A stretch of DNA of 64,000 bases, from NCBI GenBank assembly GCA_964187785.1, contig OZ076410.1, forward strand, positions 50,778,001 to 50,842,000. The letters are read 5' to 3'. The position numbers and the translations under genes are program-made. Numbering within the stretch: position 1 is the stretch's first letter; each line of letters opens with the position of its first letter. The notes under the pieces were generated by a model. The model made no database searches. It was not told where the DNA came from and saw only the letters and a list, made by a program, of their open reading frames with translations. Shown one piece after another: positions 8,213 through 40,626 of this stretch. Source of the stretch: Amphiscolops sp. MND2022 (lineage: Eukaryota).

Positions 8213-11200
8213 TGTTCATGCCGTTCTCTCTCAATTCTACGTTACTAAAAAGTCACGTTTTACCAAACCAGTTTTGGTGGCCACCGTTAACAACTCTCAT
8301 TCGAAAGAACAACGAACCGATGCTTTTTGGGGAAAAAAGGCTTGCCGAATTACCTCAAAACAAGCTTCATTAAAAAATTGCTGAAGTTCTAACATTTAAC
8401 TTCTCGGCTCAAATTCAAAGCTCAAAGCAAAGTGATAACTTAAAACAATTAAACGCCAAGAATTGAAAGTCAAGAATTCCATTCATTCAAAGTATTTCTA
8501 TTCTAAGCACCCCATCTTAAACAACAACAAAGCTACCCAAACTGGACCTGCCGACATTCTCTGGAGATTACCTCACCTGGACATCTTTTTTCGCCCTTTA
8601 AAGGAGCAGTTCACAACAACACAACTTCTCGACAGCCAGAAACTGCAATATCTCAAAACGTCTTCGAAGGGCGACGCAGCAAAACTTTTTACATTGGTAA
8701 CAATTATTGATGCTAACTATACAGTCGCTCTAAAAATGTTACGAGACCGATACCAAAACAATCGCATGATATTGCGCGCTCATGTGAACGCAATTTTTGT
8801 CCAGGAGCCACTCACCAAGGAAACAGCCAAAGACTTTGGACAACTTTTGGAAACAGTAGAAGAACACCGCTTAGCTCTGGATAATATGGGACAACCAGTC
8901 AATCAACAAGACGTTTTTCTGGTTCAACTCATAACAGAGAAACTGCCATCAGAAAAATTCTGTGAACTTTCAACTCCTGGAACAGAATCACAGACCTACG
9001 ACAACCTCAAGAAGTTTCTCGATGCCAAATGCCAGGCCCTGGAAGCAGCTACCGTCTCAACGCCGCCAACTTCAACTTTAACACAACCCCGCATTACAAC
9101 TCGTCAGAACAGTCAGCCTTCCTAATCATCACAACGGAGCTACAACATCAACGTCGCAACATCCGAGTCAAATGCAAGTGTTGCAATAACACTCGCAAGC
9201 TACACCTTTGCCTGAAGTTCAAGGATCTCACTGCCTCGAATCAAGCGGCAACTGTCAAATTGAAAAAACTCAACTTCAATTGCTTGAATGCAGGTCATCG
9301 ACATCAAGACTGCAGATGTCACCCTGCCGTCAATGCAACTTGAAGCATCATACACTTTATCTGCAATCCTCTCGACCAACTAGATCCGTCAACAACACAG
9401 TAAAAGACAACAACCAGAGTCTCGCCGCTGAAGATTCCGTTGGCACAACGCCGTCGTCACCAGAAAATCAAATCATCGCCACCTCGATTTCTCAACAAAG
9501 AACCGGAAACATTTTCCTGCAAAATGCAATGATTCCCATCTTAGCAAATGGTGAAACCACCTATTGCCGAGCTTTTTTGGATTCAGGTTCACAAAGCAAC
9601 CTGATCACTGATATTCTAGTCAAGCGACTAGGTCTACCACTTCGAAAACATCAAACGCGAATCTTTGGTCTGGGCGCCATGGATGAGCTACATCATCAAG
9701 AAACGACTGATTTCCTCCTCACACCAAAGAACGAGACAGCCATCCCATTGCGAGCCTTTGTAAAGCCAAAGCTCACTAACGTCCTACCTTCATCCACAGT
9801 CCCAACAACGTCTTGGAAGCATGTCTCAAACCTCAGACTTGTCCACCCAACATTCAACAAACCATCAGGAATTTGTATGATCTACCTTAATTCTCTGTTC
9901 GGTTCGGTTGTCATTGGAGGTTCGCCTTCAGTGCCAATTCAATCGCTCACAACATGCTTCAGTTGAATGAAATTGATTCCAGAAGATCCGTTGAAGAAAT
10001 TTTGGGAGATGGAACAGCTTCTACAAGGTCGCCATTTCACCTAAGAACAAGCCTGTGAAGAACACTTCCAAAAAACGACCAAACGTAACCAAGACGGACA
10101 ATTCGTTATCAAACTACCCTTCAAGGAAAACGCCACACCTCGGCGATCCCTTCCAACAAGCGAAACGCCGCCTCGACACACTCCTCCGACGACTCATTAG
10201 AGATGAATGTCTCTACGCCAGATACGCAGCCTTCATCGAAGACTCTCTGGATCTGTGACACATGGAGAGGATCCCGGACTCCGAAACTCCCATCGAATCC
10301 AGCAAAAGCTTTACCTGCCACACCACTGAAGGAATCAAGCACCACAACAAAACGTGTAGTTTTCGACGCTTCCGGAGTGTCACTCCACGATAATCTGATG
10401 CTCGGATTTTTTTGACAGCTTGATCAGATTGCGATTCAACAAAGTGGCTTTGTCAGCCGACATCGCCAAAATGTACCGCCGATTACTCCTCGATAAATCT
10501 ATCCGGAAACAGCAGACACCAAGCACATAGACGCCGAAGAATACTTCATCACAGCACTTGGTGTAGTCTGAAACCAAAACACGTCTTCACCTACAACGCC
10601 AATCCATCAGAAGGATCCCCGCAAACCAAACGACAAATCCTATCCGAAGTTACTCGCTTCTTCGACCCCTTGGGTCTCCTCTCGCCAATCGTCATCCAAT
10701 TGAAGTCATTTATCCAAGCACTTTGGTTGGATCAATTGAGATGGAATGACCCACTCAATCAGAAGTTGTCGCAACAGTACCAGAACCTCCGTCAGCATCT
10801 CGAATCAATCGAAGAAGTCCAGATTCCAAGGTGCGTTCTGGGTAAGAATCCGCCTTTCGAAGAAGAACCTCTACAACTTCACGTCTTTTGTGACACCTCA
10901 ATAACCGCCTACGACGCAACCGTGTACATCTGTCAACCCATTTGTCAAGGACACTTCTGGCCAAAACCACAGTCGTCCCTATCAAAACTACTTGTCTTCC
11001 TAACAAGAACTCTGTGCAGCTCTTTTGGGAGCACAATTGGTTGAATTCATCAGGAACGCTCTCGAAGAGGAAATAAGTTCGAATCTTCAAGTCTTTGCTT
11101 GGGATGATTCCACAGTCACTTTGGCTTGGATAAAAAATCATCCGAGTCGTAGGAAAACTTTCGTCGCCAACCGCGTGGCAAAGATCCAAAAATCAGTCCC

Positions 11201-18574: not shown

Positions 18575-21500
18575 TGTTGTAGACTTTGTCAAAAAGCCGA
18601 ATACAAAGAAGATTTAGTTTGTCATTGCATTGCGCGAATTTAGTTATTATTGAGCTTTCAAAAGCGTGAATTGATCAGAAATTTGAAAAGGGAAACAATG
18701 AAAAAACATGAACAAGTCCAAGTGAAGTATCAAAATGTTTTTCACGTGTCTTTATTCTTTCACGCGGTATTGCTTCATTGACAGAATATTTGAGCTTCAA
18801 CATTTCCGGCCCCATCGAAGCCAGCAGCTTCAGTACTTCCGAGAGTACAGGTGATGTAAATTGTGCATGACAATTTCACAGTCCAATGGATAGCACAAAT
18901 AAATCGTCATTGATTATTATAATCTGCATGTGTTTTGTCCGTTTCAATTAGGCTAAACAGATGGATTGAAAGAATGATGCAATCGGATGAGTCCAATCAA
19001 GATGTAAATATGTTCAACCACTTGTCAGATAACTGACATCTACCTATTGATGCTTTTGATGTAAGAATTTGAAGCTGCGTAATTCTAATAAGTTTAGTAA
19101 GTAAATGATGACTAATAATCAGTCACTGCAAGGAATTGTTCGATGATTGCAGAAGTCAAGTACGGAGTCACACTCAGCACTAGCAATTGAATGTGAGCCA
19201 TTGATAAACAAAAATGAAATCAAAATGGATAATACCCTAAAGCATTTATATCATTTGAAGCTCTTTTTGATGAGTAATTCAAGTTTCATCGAGTATTGCT
19301 TTTTGAAAGTAATTCAAAATTTGATGAGATTCTGTGGTATAAAACTCAGGGTAGATTGCATTCAAAATGACCTCCATCGGAGATGAGCAGTCCGTTAGAG
19401 ATGTGAGGGGTATCATTGCATTCAGGAGACTCTTGCGGAGATTTGTACAATCCAGATTTTAGAAACTCGACTTTAATGTTGATTTATGAGGTTTCGAAGT
19501 TCGAAAAAATGGAGAAAAAATTGAGGAATTGGAGTTCAGGCATTTCTTCACTCAAACATTTATGTGAGCGAGGCTTACTAAAGCTAGCGACTGGTTGGGA
19601 TTTTGAATGGGGAGCATTCTGATTTTTACTACAGGTCGAATCAAGCTTCCGTTTGATGTTTCCAAATTCACCACTCGGCTAATATCATCATTTCCAGTAT
19701 ACAATTTCTCAATTCGGGCCATTTGCCATCTAAGAGGTGGAAGATCATCTTCATCATTCAGCACCAAATCGCCTTCCGCAAAAGATGGACCCGAAGCAAG
19801 CCATTTTTTGTACTTGAAGTATCACCAGATAGTCTCTGTACCAGTGACTTCCAAAAAGTTCTTTTGATTCGTTCTAACAATTTGAATCTCTGAGTCAATG
19901 AGGTATTTTCATCCATGTTTTCAACTGCCGAAGGGATATCATTGGCTGGTCTCTTTAGTAGAAAGTGTGTTGAGGATATAGGCTGCCGATCGTTGGGGTC
20001 ATTAGACGTAGCTGCCAATGGTCTGGAATTCAGAATTGATTCGATTTGTATCAAACTGTGTTAATTTCTTCAAATGAAAGAACATGCAATCCAACTTTTC
20101 GTCGCAGATGGCGTTTCGTGCTTTCAATAGCAGCTTTCGATAGACCTCCAAAGTGCGGCGCTCTAGGTGGAATGGTCAGCCATTCAATTCCTAGCGGCGA
20201 AACGAAAGTGCCAAATGATTTTTCATTGCCATCTTTGTTTATTATTTCTAGTATTCTATCATGTCATTCCCTGTTCCAATAAAATTTAGTCCGTAGTCAC
20301 TGAAAAGCTTTTGTGGCAATCTTATCTGGCAGTAAATCGTTTTATGGCTGACATGCAAGCTTCCTTAGCCAAATTTTCTACAAGTTCAATATGTACTGCT
20401 TTGATTACAAAACATACAAAAACTGCAATGTTTTTACCATAGCTTTGGTGAAGATTGGTCCTTCTAAATCTAGGAATTCCTACTGTTTGGAAAGGTTCCG
20501 CAATTGTAATTCGTTCCATTGGGAGGTCCGCCATCATTTGCGTCAGAGGTTTGTTTTCGAACCTGCTGCATATAAAACAATCCTTTATAACTCTTCTCGT
20601 TGTATCTTTGCCATTAAGTATCCAGAATTCTTCACGACTAGTGTTGAGCGTGAGTAGCCCGCCGCCATGAAGAGTCGCTCCATGATAATACCTCAAAATC
20701 AGGACAGCTAGTGTGGACGCTTTGCTTATCAAATATGGAACCTTTTTGGAGTCTATAAACTCCCTGTGCCAAACGACCACCTGCTCTGATCGTTTCGGTC
20801 TGTCGTAGAAGGGTGACAGGTTGAGTAAAGTACTATCCCTTTTCAAACTCGATCCTCTTTCTAAAGCGTTCATTTCTTTCGGGGAAAAAGAATTTTTGAT
20901 GACTTCGTAAAAATAATTCTTTGCAATTTCCAGATCTGTTATTGATTTTCTGTTGATTCTGTGGATGTGCTCAAGTTTGATGCACAATTGGTCTCAACAG
21001 ACTGTTTGCATCAACTCTCTGGCGGGGTACTTGATAATTGGGGCTGTGGTAGTCATTCTGCATCTGAAGAGTTCAAGAAGTCTGGTCCATTCCACCAAAG
21101 TTCAGATTGCATAAGATCACTGACATCTGCACGACGAGATGACAAGTCAACAGGATTGTTTTGAGAGGGACGTGGTTCCACTTGCTCCTTGGGAAAAAGT
21201 CCTGGATTTCCGAAACTCAATTTGCGACAAACGTCGCCCAAGTTCGTGGAAGTTGATTGAGGCATGGCGATACAATTGCTGAATCAGTCCAAGCGTGGAC
21301 TGAATCAATCGTAATGGCGAAGGATTGTAGTGATTCGATGACTGTCTTGATAAGCCGAGTTCTCAATTATGCACCGCACAACTCCAACCGAAGCAAACTG
21401 ACTACCTTCACAGGCGCTACACGTGTTTTCGCAACTAGACGTTGAACTGAAATTGATCCATCTGATGATTGAAAACGACTATACACAGTGGTGGCATAAG

Positions 21501-35297: not shown

Positions 35298-36484
35298 CAG
35301 GGGTTTGCAATAATTAATTGGTCTTCCAATAATTGCAATAATAATTGCCAATATTATTGATTGGGCACTTTTCCAATAACCAATTAATTGGAAATCGTTT
35401 TGCCAACTATTGGTTTCATTGGTTTTCAAATTGAAAGCTCTTTTTCAGGTTTGAAATGAGTTCGAACAGAGATTTTAAAACCATATGCAAGAAGTATTTC
35501 ACACCAATGGAAAATGACATTTTCAAATGCAAATGTGGCAAAATTTTGAAGCAAAAAAAAGGTACCGGTTGGTCTAATTTGATGGTGCATATTCGAACAC
35601 AACACGAAACAACTCCATCCGGTCCCCAAAATACTTTGGACTTTATGCAATGTAAGAAGTCTCAAACCATCCATGATTGGATCGAATGGATATGCATGGA
35701 GCTTCGACCTTTTAGCTTTGTGGAAAGCGAGTATGTGAAGAAAAATGTCAAGCTTGAAGCAATATGGATATGGATACTTGATATGGATATGGACTCTGCT
35801 CGGACCTTGTTCGACGAGTTATTGAAAACTGTCGAGAATTTTGATCGGAACAAGAAATATATCCATAAGAATTGTGCCATTGCCAAAAACAATTCGTTTG
35901 AAAACGCTATTGTTAAGCTACAGTCTGGTGATGAATGTGCTCTCAACGTAAATGAAAATCTAGCGTGCAAAAAATTGAGAAGAACTTCTGATATCGAGTG
36001 CGAATTTCCACAGACGGATGACTTCGCGGGAAACGTTTTGGCGAAAAAGAAGAAAGATACCAAACAGATGAAATACATTCCCTGCTCGTTCATTTTGCCG
36101 ACATCTAATCATTTGGAACGGTTTTTTAGCGCAGCTGGTTTCGCTTCGAATGACTACCGAAAATCAACTTTGCCGATGAATTTAGAAGAGCAACTGTTCC
36201 TTCGATTTAACAAAAAGCACTGGGATTTGAATTTAGTAAATCAAATTGTGAGTGCCTCTGAGTGAGATATTCATTTGAGTGTGCATGCCGCTGAGTGAGC
36301 TGTTTTATAATGCGTCTTTTCGATGATTTTTGTAATTTAATCACTCTGAAACAGCTGTTTTTTAAAGTGCCCAATTATTGCACTTATTGCAATAATTTAT
36401 TGGTCAAGGGTCCAATAATCAATTAATTGGTTTTCAGAAGTTTTGGGACCAATAATTATTGCAATTATTTATTGCAAAGCCCTG
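35298..36484 (+). mobile_element. Internally deleted hAT DNA transposon, 8-bp TSD CTCCGTTC
   Basis: TIR CAGGG(G/C)TTTGCAATAA(T/A)TAATTG; perfect CTCCGTTC on both sides; AATTATTG-type subterminal repeats. Confidence 0.95.
35456..36265 (+). CDS. 269-aa truncated hAT transposase: BED finger joined in frame to the C-terminal dimerisation region
   Basis: FKCKCGK...GWSNLMVHIRTQH (BED) and LPTSNHLERFFSAAG...LEEQLFL (hATC); far too short to hold the whole catalytic core. Confidence 0.85.
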   Translation: MSSNRDFKTICKKYFTPMENDIFKCKCGKILKQKKGTGWSNLMVHIRTQHETTPSGPQNTLDFMQCKKSQTIHDWIEWICMELRPFSFVESEYVKKNVKLEAIWIWILDMDMDSARTLFDELLKTVENFDRNKKYIHKNCAIAKNNSFENAIVKLQSGDECALNVNENLACKKLRRTSDIECEFPQTDDFAGNVLAKKKKDTKQMKYIPCSFILPTSNHLERFFSAAGFASNDYRKSTLPMNLEEQLFLRFNKKHWDLNLVNQIVSASE

Positions 36485-36716
36485 CTCCGTTCTCTGTCAA
36501 ATTTCCCTTGTCTCTGAACTTTGTCAATTTCGACTGCAACTCTTCAACTCATCTATTTCGTTCATTACTTCTTTCAATTTTTCGTTCACTAGGATAGCAT
36601 TTTCTTCTTCACTTTTAGTCAGGTCTTCAGGTAGACCCCGTACGCGAAATCTTGATAAAATATTGTAAAACAACGGCGTTGTTAGCGATAAGTCGAATGA
36701 TTGGTGAGATTAAAAA

Positions 36717-36797
36717 AGCCATTTGGTCTAAGGGTTAAGGCGCTTGACTGCTAGCTAGATCTGTCTTGAGATGCAGGTTCGAGTCCTGTAATGGCTA
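36717..36797 (+). ncRNA. tRNA-like Pol III gene in the TRIM 5' LTR (type II cloverleaf, GCT at the anticodon position)
   Basis: Acceptor AGCCATT/AATGGCT, D-stem GTCT/AGGC, variable arm ATCT/AGAT, T-arm GCAGG-TTCGAGT-CCTGT, A- and B-boxes, TTTT immediately downstream; anticodon stem poorly paired. Confidence 0.8.
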
Positions 36798-36833
36798 TTT
36801 TCTCACAATCATGTCGAGCTTGGGTTGTTATAC

Positions 36834-36847
36834 TGGTAGCCATTACA
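36834..36847 (+). promoter_or_regulatory. Primer-binding site TGGTAGCCATTACA
   Basis: One nt after the 5' LTR; reverse complement is TGTAATGGCTACCA, the LTR tRNA 3' end plus CCA. Confidence 0.85.
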
Positions 36848-36970
36848 TAAGTGGCTTGAATCTCCAGGTGTGTTGTGTTCAACTGGGAGCTGTGTGGCAT
36901 CAGCTTCAGTTAGAAGGGAATAATATAACGGCGTTGTTAGTGATAAGCGAATGATTGGTGAGATTAAATA

Positions 36971-37051
36971 AGCCATTTGGTCTAAGGATTAAGGCGCTTG
37001 ACTGCTAGCTAGATCTGTCTTGAGATGCAGGTTCGAGTCCTGTAATGGCTA
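36971..37051 (+). ncRNA. tRNA-like Pol III gene in the TRIM 3' LTR
   Basis: Same cloverleaf as 36717-36797, with one D-loop substitution. Confidence 0.8.
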
Positions 37052-38229
37052 TTTTCTCACAATCATGTCGAGCTTGGGTTGTTATAATTATAATGTTTCT
37101 CCGACTTTTCCTTCAAGTCAATTTTTTTCCGGAATGGCATTGATTTTGGGTTCAATCTTTTACCAATCACAGTATTAACAACTTTAGTTTTTGATTCAGT
37201 TTGTTACGACATTGCTTGGTGTCCAATACTTCAGTTTTTCTGTTACTTGCGACACGGTCGTCACAGAACAAGGCGAAACGACCACCTAGTTCTTTGATGC
37301 CATTTATTGCAACGTTTGATAGACCTGTGCAGGTAGTGTTCAAATGCATTTTGTTCCATGCACAACATGCAACTGTTATTGAATATTTTGTATGTATACT
37401 TGAACATCGCCAATAACATTAGATCTCAACACACTGCTTAGCAACTAACTACAGAGAATAGTCAGATCTGGTGTCAACGGAGCAGGTGAAGAGAGAGATT
37501 GCTGGCCAGTAGAAGCTGCTCGGCCAAATAGAGCCATTTGGTAACATCTGAAAAAGTAACTGCACTTTAAAAATAAATTTCACGAATCATATATTTGTCG
37601 AATCCAGAGCTTTTAAAAACATTTCTCGATTTATAATTTTTTACTCTCAGATTACTTAGATTGTAATCATTTCTTTCGAAAGAAATATAAGGAGACCAAC
37701 ACGCGTACATGGAGACTCCTACGCAGATGTGGAAACTGCAACATCTTTGAAAAACTGCAACTAAACTAAAACTGTCTATCAAAAGGAGAAACAACCTCTA
37801 TTCTACTACTACTAATATTTATCTGCTTCGATGTTGGTCGTCATGTTAGTGGAGACAATGCTACACTCACTGGTGATCAGCAAACGAGAAGAAACAGTCA
37901 ACGAAAATCAAAAGTATCTCATTACTCATGCTAGCCACTAGCCTAGTAGAACGGGACAACTCAATACTTCTCGATATTCAGACTGCAAAAGAGTTCATTC
38001 GATTTCACATATACTGTTTTCTTCAACGAATGTATAGTCGAAACTCCTCATCCATGCAGCAACGTAAACCCATTCCACCAAAAACCTGACAAGTGCTGTG
38101 TACCAAATGAACGACTTGTGAGCATGATATACTCTACTTTTCAAAAAAGAGGAGTCTAAGCCAAGCAAAAACACTCCAGATGAAATAGATCGTCGTCGAC
38201 AATGTGATGTCAAGTTAGTTATAATGTTG

Positions 38230-38384: not shown

Positions 38385-39091
38385 CGCGTAGTATGATATG
38401 TGGGGCATATCCGGTGTATGCACGCTCGTCCTCACCGTCGCAAAGACCAGCTCCCACTACGATCGCTTCTCGATCTCCGTTCCCGCTAGGTCTTTGCTCC
38501 TGTTCGACCTCGCTTAGCAAGATGGGAATATAAGCGGCCCCAAGGGGCGGCGGGGCACTAGAGGAAATGGGGACATATCCGAGGCACGTTTTATGCTTTC
38601 CACCATTCCTACATTATAGGTCTCATCGTTTTTCTTCCAGAATTCTAAAAACTGGTATTCTACAAACGGGTGGGCGGAAATAGGTCGAAGGAACGGGATC
38701 GAAAATCAGAGTTAGTCCTCAGGTCGACAATACCAAATTTTTGAATGGGATCGAAACAACTCGGATCGAAATTTTTATAACGTAGTCAGATATGTTTACA
38801 TACCCCTAGTGCCCTGAATGCAGGAGCGAAGCGAAGCGGAGCGACGTGCCATATGGCCATCCCTCAACCGAACAGGTTCTTTGTAATTCGATCAAAAGGT
38901 TCGACCTCAGTCCTTTCGACCAGAAAAATTCGACCTATTTACAGCCACCCTTCTACAAACTAGACCTAACCAGTTTGTAGAAAACTAAAAACAAAACCAA
39001 CATAATACGGGACGTTTCGGCATGAAAAATTTGCCGAAACTTCTCGAAATTTTTCTTTGCCGAAACGTCTTTGCCGAAACGTCCTGTTCCC
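38385..39091 (-). mobile_element. Composite MITE of the GCCGAAACGTC family, inverted homolog of 55202-55749
   Basis: Right end CCTGTTCCC; internal 38385-38640 closely matches 55380-55640 in reverse; left end truncated. Confidence 0.8.
38668..38950. mobile_element. GGTCGAA-repeat MITE, 10-bp TSD TTCTACAAAC
   Basis: TIR GGGTGG...AAATAGGTCGAA; the empty site is visible in the homolog at ~55345-55385. Confidence 0.85.
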
Positions 39092-40007
39092 GTTCAACAC
39101 ATGTTGGATCACATCCACATGGCCTTGGAACATATCTAGGATCGCTCTTATCAAAAAGCCGGGAAAGAAATCCTACGAACAATGCTCCAGCTATAGACCA
39201 TTATCTATTTCTAGCCATGTTGGAAAGTTATTTGAGAGAATGATTTCTGCTAGACTGAAGCTTTACTTCGAAACTCACAATATCCTTGATGAAAAACAAG
39301 AAGGTTTCAGGACTCATCGGAGAACTACCCGTTCTTTGTATCGTATGCATCTCATATCAGAGGAAGCAAAGCGCTCGAAAAAGCCGACTGCACCAATGAA
39401 TATTGATCTGGAAAAGGCATTTGATAGGGTTGAACGGAAATGGGTCAAAAGAAATGGGTCGAATCGGCCTCCTGTGCCATGGGTCGAATCTTCACCGTTT
39501 CGGAATTGGGTCGAATGGACTTGGGTCGACCTTGAAAAATGCCAAGTTCAAGGGAGACAACATATTGATTTCGACCCAAGTCCATTCGACCCAATTCGAC
39601 CTCAGTCAATTCGACTTAAGTTATTCGACCAAAAGGGTCGACCTAATTCTTTTCGACCTATTTCATTCGACCCATTTCATGCAATCCTTTGATAGCATTT
39701 GTGTCGAAGGTCTGCTTTATAAACTTGAATCGGTGAATTTGCCCCACAGGCTGCTATGTATCATATCATCCTTTCTTAGCAATCGGAAGGGATTCATTGA
39801 TATCAACGGCCATTACACTGAACTTTTCGATTTTAATGTTGGTCTCCCCCAAGGCCGTGTGATTTCCCCTCTTCTTTTTATTTTTTACCTGTGTGACTTC
39901 TTATCCGAAGTCGAGGTAAAGTTCAAATTTGCAGATGACAGCTCGGCTATCATCTCTGCTTTTAACACAGATACCTTACATTCAGCTCTACAAGCTATTT
40001 GTCATAA
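39092..40007 (+). mobile_element. LINE reverse transcriptase, N-terminal part (Jockey/I-like)
   Basis: SYRPLSISSHVGKLFERMI, QEGFR, IDLEKAFD, GLPQGRVISPLLF, KFADD; interrupted by a MITE and then by the gypsy LTR. Confidence 0.92.
39427..39687. mobile_element. GGTCGAA-repeat MITE, 7-bp TSD TTTGATA
   Basis: Inserted in the KAFD|S codons of the LINE RT; TTTGATA on both sides; removal restores the frame. Confidence 0.9.
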
Positions 40008-40626
40008 TGTAGCGTTCCGAGATGAACGTTTTGTTGAATTTGAAGGATTTTCGGGACGAGTTGAGTTGACTGGAACGCTTTTTGAAGGATACTTTTTATA
40101 TTGAATGTTAAATTAGAAGATATGTGAGGTTGAAATTGATAGACAGAGAAAATTGTATTTAGCGCGAAAGATGGTTGAAGGAAAGGTGGAAGATTCGACG
40201 CAGAAAGGCTCAAAAGCAAAATGTCTAACTTCCCAAACTTCCTTAAATACCCCTTATCAGACAATATTTTGGTGACTCCCACCATTATCGGAGTTATTTT
40301 ATTACATTATACCCAGACCTGTCGAAACCCGTTGGCCTGTGGTTACGTTATCAACATTTACTGTCGAACCCCGACAGTACAATGTGACTAAGTTATCGAG
40401 CCCGTCAACTTCAATTTACGATGTGTCACGTAAATATTATTTTATTGCCAGCCATATTTTAGGCTATAAAATCTTTCCATTTTTTTCATTTAATTCTTTC
40501 TTTAGATTTTCAAAAATATCATATAGGTTTCCTATATTTCTCCCTTTCCTATGAGAAGTTAGCACATTCAAGTAGCACCATGAAAACTAATTGTTGTTTT
40601 TAAAAGTTAACAATTCATCAGCTGCC

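Follow-up and report, generated by a model that had tools for sequence, protein, structure and literature searches.

To our knowledge, all of the tRNA-primed retroviruses and long terminal repeat (LTR) retrotransposons that have been studied borrow a host tRNA to prime reverse transcription, and the sole exception is the Tf1 group, which uses its own mRNA folded back on itself. Self-priming of this kind is established in Tf1, Tf2, Maggy and Skippy (PMC6934838). Helenus (TRIMp3) elements are TRIMs (miniature retrotransposons with terminal repeats) whose LTRs contain tRNA-like sequence (Kojima 2024, Biology 13:119, PMC10886601). Their primer binding sites (PBSs) have been assigned to host tRNAs (Lys, Leu, Trp, Arg, His, Ile, Pro, Glu or Ser) or to fungal anticodon loops, and no Helenus was found with complementarity between the LTR tRNA-like sequence and the PBS. 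That account gives 4-bp target site duplications (TSDs) for animal Helenus and infers that these elements are moved by Gypsy elements. Here we describe a TRIM from Amphiscolops sp. MND2022, located at 36666-37086 of the 64,000-nucleotide stretch that we analysed (contig OZ076410.1, positions 50,778,001 to 50,842,000; hereafter the window), whose PBS is exactly complementary to the CCA-extended 3' end of the tRNA-like module in its own LTRs.

We assign this element to a new Helenus-type (TRIMp3) TRIM family; the initial annotation of the window had named Helenus as TRIMs with tRNA-like LTRs, in agreement with Kojima 2024 (PMC10886601). Like Helenus, the element is shorter than 1 kb, has no open reading frame (ORF), possesses a PBS and a polypurine tract (PPT), carries a tRNA-derived module of RNA polymerase III (Pol III) type in its LTRs, leaves 4-bp TSDs, and is present in multiple copies that include tandem arrays. 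In contrast to Helenus, the PBS matches the element's own module plus CCA at 14 of 14 positions, no fitting host tRNA was found with the four genome-wide patterns described below, and the LTRs end in TA...TA, not TG...CA. Kojima 2024 raised the idea of such a match and found no instance of it (PMC10886601), so it cannot be put down to Helenus organization in general; having been sought in the described families and found absent there, the complementarity is a new feature. The PBS and LTR motifs were not found in the consensus file of that study, in which line wrapping could hide a match, and a search of the literature brought up no LTR-encoded primer. The TRIM family described from bivalves is unrelated and lacks a clear PBS (PMC6934838).

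Two other kinds of element invite comparison. Cassandra and Ajax TRIMs likewise have a Pol III small-RNA gene in both LTRs, with a terminator after the module; their module, however, is derived from 5S rRNA and is not tRNA-like, and no relationship between module and PBS has been reported. tRNA-derived short interspersed elements (SINEs) share the tRNA-like Pol III head and its A and B boxes, the decayed anticodon arm and copy numbers in the hundreds, but they lack LTRs, PBS and PPT, and they have A-rich or LINE-derived tails and TSDs of variable length. We considered a tRNA-derived SINE and rejected it: a free-standing tRNA SINE version of the module is ruled against because every inspected copy of the module lies in an LTR context, and no free-standing version was found.

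The tRNA-like LTR module and its match to the primer binding site

The PBS, TGGTAGCCATTACA, is the exact reverse complement of the last 11 nt of the module, TGTAATGGCTA, followed by CCA (14/14), just as the initial annotation had stated. Eleven of the matching bases are templated, and since the cloverleaf dictates where one side of the match must lie and the LTR end dictates the other, the probability of such a match arising by chance is ~4^-11. The exact 14-nt PBS is present in 144 copies in the genome, versus 2 for a reversed control. Among the 30 of these 144 contexts that we inspected, 28 were copies of the TRIM, and the other two (L034 and L044) are probably chance matches. When fixed flanking sequences were used as anchors, 73 of 102 PBSs were exact and the remainder carried scattered single changes, leaving one PBS type. 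LTR variability is uniform at 2-3% per site. We examined the copies for covariation between acceptor stem and PBS, but with a single PBS type the family is too homogeneous to show any, which speaks neither for nor against the proposed pairing.

Each LTR contains an 81-nt tRNA-like module in which TTTT directly follows the discriminator A. ARAGORN called both modules on the plus strand as tRNA-???, with an aberrant anticodon loop and a 2-nt 'anticodon', and Rfam model RF00005 (gathering score 29) gave 46.4 bits (E=8e-9) for the 5' module and 43.8 bits for the 3' module. The minimum-free-energy fold is cloverleaf-like. In the Infernal alignment, a 7-bp acceptor stem (AGCCATT/AATGGCT) and a 5-bp T arm are paired, and there are two non-canonical anticodon-stem pairs and an 11-nt insertion; the module further has a class-II-like long variable arm and a degenerate anticodon arm. 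A 7-nt anticodon loop on a paired 5-bp stem, as a decoding tRNA has, was seen by neither ARAGORN nor Infernal. The earlier description of paired acceptor and T arms with an unpaired anticodon arm is borne out. Of the 81-nt cloverleaf with A and B boxes ahead of TTTT that it named, the B box, GGTTCGAGTCC, is perfect and the T4 follows at once; the A-box region, TGGTCTAAGGG, as judged by eye matches in part only. An exact 26-mer that reaches from the B box through the T arm and the 3' strand of the acceptor to the terminator (GGTTCGAGTCCTGTAATGGCTATTTT) occurs 242 times in the genome and 0 times as a control.

One old family copy has an extended PBS. This copy, on contig C7, is itself duplicated 62 kb apart (L070:1460-1530 and L071; C7:3253824-3253884 and C7:3315939-3315999, minus strand). 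After the 5' LTR, TGGTAGCCATTACA runs seamlessly into AGACTTGAACCTGGATCTCAAGGCAAGG, a further 28 nt, and the resulting 42 nt are antisense to the variable arm, T arm and acceptor strand of the module plus CCA, with 35 of 39 positions matching the LTR consensus. Next come TATAG and a second PBS of normal form, after which the interior and 3' LTR complete the copy; the TSD is ATAT. This is the pattern expected if plus-strand synthesis had gone further than usual into a primer with the sequence of the module, and it lends weak support to a self-supplied primer. No further copies with an extended PBS were found beyond the one duplicated C7 locus. We also considered the interior as a whole to be a decayed antisense copy of the primer and rejected this, as 1217 of 2000 shuffles scored as well beyond the 14-nt PBS; colinear sense likeness of the interior to the module was not significant either (703/5000).

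The complementarity could have a role other than priming, or no role. It might form a U5-PBS stem concerned with primer access or packaging, or might be an inverted repeat of the founder that was fixed by chance, with priming achieved through a short match to another RNA. Stems between the U5 or leader region and the PBS are common in retroelements, and the family looks like a single burst, in which features of the founder would appear in all copies regardless of function. Copies at three loci are rearranged at the PBS (L046 and L047, at C2:21130543 and C2:21138958, and L051, at C2:40570288), such that an inverted LTR-end piece abuts the PBS or two elements stand head to head at it. The 11-bp inverted repeat formed by LTR and PBS may have given rise to these rearrangements, and inverted rearrangements at this repeat are in keeping with a non-priming origin. 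Against it, the match starts exactly at the discriminator and covers the canonical PBS position including the complement of CCA, neither of which a regulatory stem needs, and no alternative primer is detectable. We regard a non-priming explanation as very unlikely.

The copy in the window is a complete, non-coding LTR retrotransposon (Table 1). LTR boundaries were set from TSDs and junctions across copies together with a consensus of 51 LTRs. The consensus LTR is 167 bp long with ends TATAACAAC...GTTGTTATA, and the consensus element measures 167 + 91 + 167 = 425 bp. Within the window, direct repeats at 36694-36832 and 36948-37086 are 99% identical, and their likeness reaches 5' to ~36666 and ~36924, respectively. 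The interior consists of C, the PBS and the PPT (AGAAGGGRATAA), which ends 3 nt before the 3' LTR; at 91 bp it is too short for protein coding. The two LTRs, 91-bp interior, PPT and PBS one base after the 5' LTR that had first been noticed here are thus all present in the sequence. Of the original span, 36664-37086, the right end stands and the left end does not, since the LTR begins at 36666 and the preceding ATTG is the TSD. In one DNA contig from a second sample (run X2), 36666 is joined to 37093, with 426 bp skipped and single-nucleotide polymorphisms nearby; the contig would be either an empty allele, the insertion being polymorphic, or an empty site at a paralogue. Repetitive sequence also makes up the left flank of the TRIM at 36400-36500.

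Table 1. Coordinates of the TRIM features in the window and the evidence for each
Feature	Position	Strand	Evidence
Left TSD, ATTG	36662..36665	+	ATTG/ATTA in this copy, a 3/4 match
5' LTR, 167 bp; consensus TATAACAACGG...GGGTTGTTATA, 9-bp terminal inverted repeat	36666..36832	+	TSDs across copies, 51-LTR consensus
tRNA-like module of 5' LTR (LTR positions 52-132)	36717..36797	+	ARAGORN, RF00005, minimum-free-energy fold
TTTT, candidate Pol III terminator, directly after discriminator base	36798..36801	+	Sequence
Internal domain, 91 bp, without coding capacity	36833..36923	+	Consensus of 26 elements, BLAST of copies
PBS TGGTAGCCATTACA, one base (C, 36833) after the LTR	36834..36847	+	Sequence
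PPT AGAAGGGAA (consensus AGAAGGGGA), then TAA, then 3' LTR	36912..36920	+	Sequence, consensus
3' LTR, 163 bp here; AAC and T deletions relative to consensus	36924..37086	+	Direct repeat, other copies
tRNA-like module of 3' LTR, then TTTT at 37052-37055	36971..37051	+	ARAGORN, RF00005
Right TSD, ATTA	37087..37090	+	Copy comparison

Family copies and other possible sources of the primer

A 423-bp query identified at least 645 candidate places in the 1.07-Gb assembly to which the window belongs, on all large contigs; the best 74 of these were 86-100% identical to the query, and all but three of the 74 were at least 94% identical. BLAST of LTR plus interior against 60 retrieved loci revealed LTR-interior-LTR copies of simple form, LTRs that were solo or truncated, and frequent tandem arrays, (LTR-interior)n, whose period is 258 bp. 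One array has ~25 units (C11:55289693-55296052), and others lie at C6:71.47 Mb and C7:21.16 Mb. Perfect 4-bp TSDs flank 19 of 27 simple copies, and four more match at 3 of 4 positions. A one-off tandem duplication, which the initial annotation had named as a way in which its reading could fail, is not what these dispersed, TSD-flanked copies represent. LTR identity within elements is 95-99%, and together with the uniform 2-3% decay this appears to indicate one burst that was not very recent.

A primer with the required 3' end could be supplied from outside the family. A host tRNA, or the Pol III transcript of another repeat, would then prime the element, and the LTR module would be a captured or decayed copy of it; host tRNA primers have, after all, been assigned to all of the described Helenus families (PMC10886601). 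The whole genome was searched with exact patterns consisting of a canonical T loop plus AATGGCTA, and family LTRs were excluded in four ways. Requiring that the base after the discriminator not be T gave 17 matches, and requiring that the +5 base not be C gave 21; an upstream flank without the two family-specific Gs (the 5'-end pattern) gave 6, and a variable-arm side without the two family-specific Gs gave 10. All matches with a tRNA-like context were point-mutated, truncated or rearranged LTRs of the TRIM family, and those at L073, L074, L077 and L082 had no tRNA-like sequence around them. By these four patterns, no host tRNA or SINE with the acceptor AGCCATT/AATGGCTA was found outside family LTRs. 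In 260 kb of fetched loci, 106 of the 107 tRNA-like calls made by ARAGORN came from the TRIM family. We know of no conserved metazoan cytoplasmic tRNA that matches the A1-U72 stem of the module, and the initiator tRNA has just 7 nt, GCTACCA, in common with it.

The multi-copy host tRNA that was sought as a refutation of the first reading was not found, and with these patterns the 3' end of the module came up only in family LTRs and at chance sites. A multi-copy gene almost certainly would have been caught; a host tRNA or SINE that has this end and many copies is therefore effectively excluded, and a single-copy host gene is unlikely. One match is still a candidate. At C12:10027175-10027204 (minus strand), TCTAACCAGGTTCGAGTCCTGTAATGGCTA is identical to the module in the T loop and 3' end, with unrelated sequence upstream; it looks like a 5' truncation and is the sole remaining candidate for a free-standing gene. 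The tRNA census is also incomplete, in that 63 of 117,979 candidates were scored in the RF00005 genome scan. Taking both sides together, we consider a primer from a host tRNA or another repeat to be quite unlikely. The genome-wide first pass returned ~118,000 tRNA-like candidates, and most tRNA predictions in this genome are therefore repeat-derived. Large clusters of canonical tRNA genes in tandem, scoring high (60-74 bits), were observed at C7:5.23-5.34 Mb, C8:47.9 Mb, C9:57.55 Mb and C1504.

Possible priming in trans and in cis

We favour, with moderate confidence, the reading that a CCA-tailed tRNA-like primer is supplied by the element's own LTRs and acts in trans. The TRIM would be a non-autonomous, Helenus-type element, moved in trans by an autonomous LTR retrotransposon that leaves 4-bp TSDs. 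Each LTR would contain a Pol III unit, in which a tRNA-like gene has its A and B boxes inside and stops at T4. The transcript would keep the parts that are read by RNase P, RNase Z and the CCA-adding enzyme, namely the acceptor stem and T arm, and would have lost a usable anticodon arm. Once matured and CCA-tailed, the primer RNA would end in ...AAUGGCUACCA, and its last 14 nt, UGUAAUGGCUACCA, would anneal to the PBS of the full-length element RNA, which either Pol III, by read-through, or Pol II would make. The annealed tRNA-like RNA would prime minus-strand DNA synthesis, giving a product in which tRNA-like-CCA is joined to the complement of ...GGGTTGTTATAC. The primer could come from any of ~240 or more intact LTRs. 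In retroviruses every round of replication copies the plus-strand PBS anew from the primer, and because of this recopying a perfect match of TGG plus 11 nt would be expected after repeated use of a CCA-tailed primer. We are evenly divided on whether this is the first LTR retroelement with a gene for its own reverse-transcription primer, one that would be Pol III-transcribed, processed by RNase P and RNase Z, and CCA-tailed.

The same complementarity could instead act in cis, as in Tf1 and Tf2, if the 3' strand of the tRNA-like module in the 5' LTR folded onto the PBS 36 nt downstream. RNase Z, cutting at the discriminator, or the RNase H of the partner would create a new 3' OH that primes the same molecule, and no CCA-tailed RNA would be involved. 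RNAfold of 36717-36860, a hypothetical read-through RNA, indeed places UGUAAUGGCUAUU on the PBS in a 13-bp stem (two G-U) in both the minimum-free-energy and the centroid structure, and the copy with the 42-nt extended PBS fits copying of the element's own LTR strand equally well. In common with Tf1 and Tf2, a primer would be encoded by the element, the PBS has a complement of ~11 nt upstream, and a fold-back in cis is predicted. In Tf1, however, it is the 5' end of the mRNA that is complementary to the PBS and is cut by the element's RNase H, without a tRNA-like fold, a Pol III unit or a complement to CCA, whereas here the complementary segment is internal and forms the 3' end of a complete tRNA-like gene with its own terminator, and the PBS includes TGG. 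This TGG is Watson-Crick complementary to CCA but could form only G-U wobble pairs with the templated UU, and under cis self-priming it would be a 1-in-64 coincidence or a relic. Nor does a cis hairpin need the B box, 7-bp acceptor stem and T4 that are kept in 242 intact LTRs. The retention of everything for tRNA-type maturation, while the anticodon arm was lost, favours a free CCA-tailed primer, and we judge cis self-priming, a real rival nonetheless, to be unlikely.

Several points weigh against a self-supplied primer acting in trans. That the module is transcribed, processed, CCA-tailed and used in priming, and what kind of element is the partner, are inferences from the sequence. Pol III would be expected to terminate at the T4 adjoining the module and so not reach the PBS, a difficulty for every model; the genomic RNA must therefore be a read-through or Pol II product. 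In the modelled read-through RNA, 11 of the 14 pairs, plus two G-U pairs, would form in cis. The PBS and acceptor stem are monomorphic across the family, and any selection on their pairing is hypothetical. Template switching at the 11-bp LTR/PBS inverted repeat would equally explain the 42-nt PBS, which represents a single event. The candidate at C12:10027175 seems to keep the question of a host gene alive, and the pattern tests amount to less than a full tRNA census. The 95-99% LTR identity within elements suggests that the family may no longer be active. Finally, a second tRNA-like module (L067:178-248), 71 nt long and called by ARAGORN as tRNA-Val gac, has the T arm GGTTCGAGTCCTGT in common with the TRIM module, but a PBS to match it was not found: the one predicted, TGGTAGAGCGGACA, is present 3 times genome-wide versus 1 for the control. 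This second module is probably a SINE or another LTR cassette.

The initial annotation had proposed that autonomous elements with the same PBS be sought. None emerged from the 30 of 144 PBS contexts inspected, in which the two sites outside the family (L034 and L044) have no ORFs nearby; these contexts likewise yielded no autonomous Gypsy or Copia partner that shares the PBS, of the kind known for Helenus. A copy with a long interior (L056) was considered as a partner and rejected, as it is a TRIM with a nested non-LTR fragment. The area around C2:8.916 Mb, inferred, perhaps wrongly, to hold a BEL/Pao LTR with a tRNA cassette, contained no tRNA-like sequence and no LTR pair. BEL/Pao elements are very abundant in the genome, with 6,212 peptidase candidates.

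Surroundings of the element and implications

Retroelement fragments elsewhere in the window include a BEL/Pao gag (DUF1759) with an aspartic protease ORF (8463-9966, plus strand), an ORF with an integrase zinc-binding domain (20322-20987, minus strand) and two overlapping RVT_1 ORFs (39057-40104, plus strand). No tRNA-like LTR module accompanies these fragments within the window. An ORF of 269 aa with a BED zinc finger (35456-36265, plus strand) precedes the TRIM by ~400 bp; this ORF may be a gene that was domesticated or came from a transposon, and the TRIM may lie in its 3' region. Between 47692 and 58904 there are several direct repeats of 150-300 nt or more, 94-98% identical and spaced by 2.1, 2.9 and 4.3 kb, and we interpret this region as a block of segmental duplication or tandem repeats.

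Annotation of this genome calls for caution, as LTR modules account for hundreds of its tRNA predictions. If the LTRs do encode the primer, a dedicated primer gene would be a third solution to the problem of priming, and supply of the primer would rest with the element family and not with the host tRNA pool. That a private primer allows escape from host tRNA pools, or from silencing by tRNA fragments, as first proposed, is pure speculation. The puzzling tRNA-like modules of TRIMp3 elements would gain a function, and may act as primer genes in addition to promoters; self-supply would also account for the cloverleaf having kept only its upper half, made up of the acceptor stem and T arm. Kojima 2024 reported that a self-match was absent (PMC10886601), and the perfect 14-nt match found here makes that dismissed idea testable. 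The family would thus provide a natural system in which to study the co-evolution of PBS and primer, and whether the choice of primer restricts which autonomous element can mobilise a TRIM.

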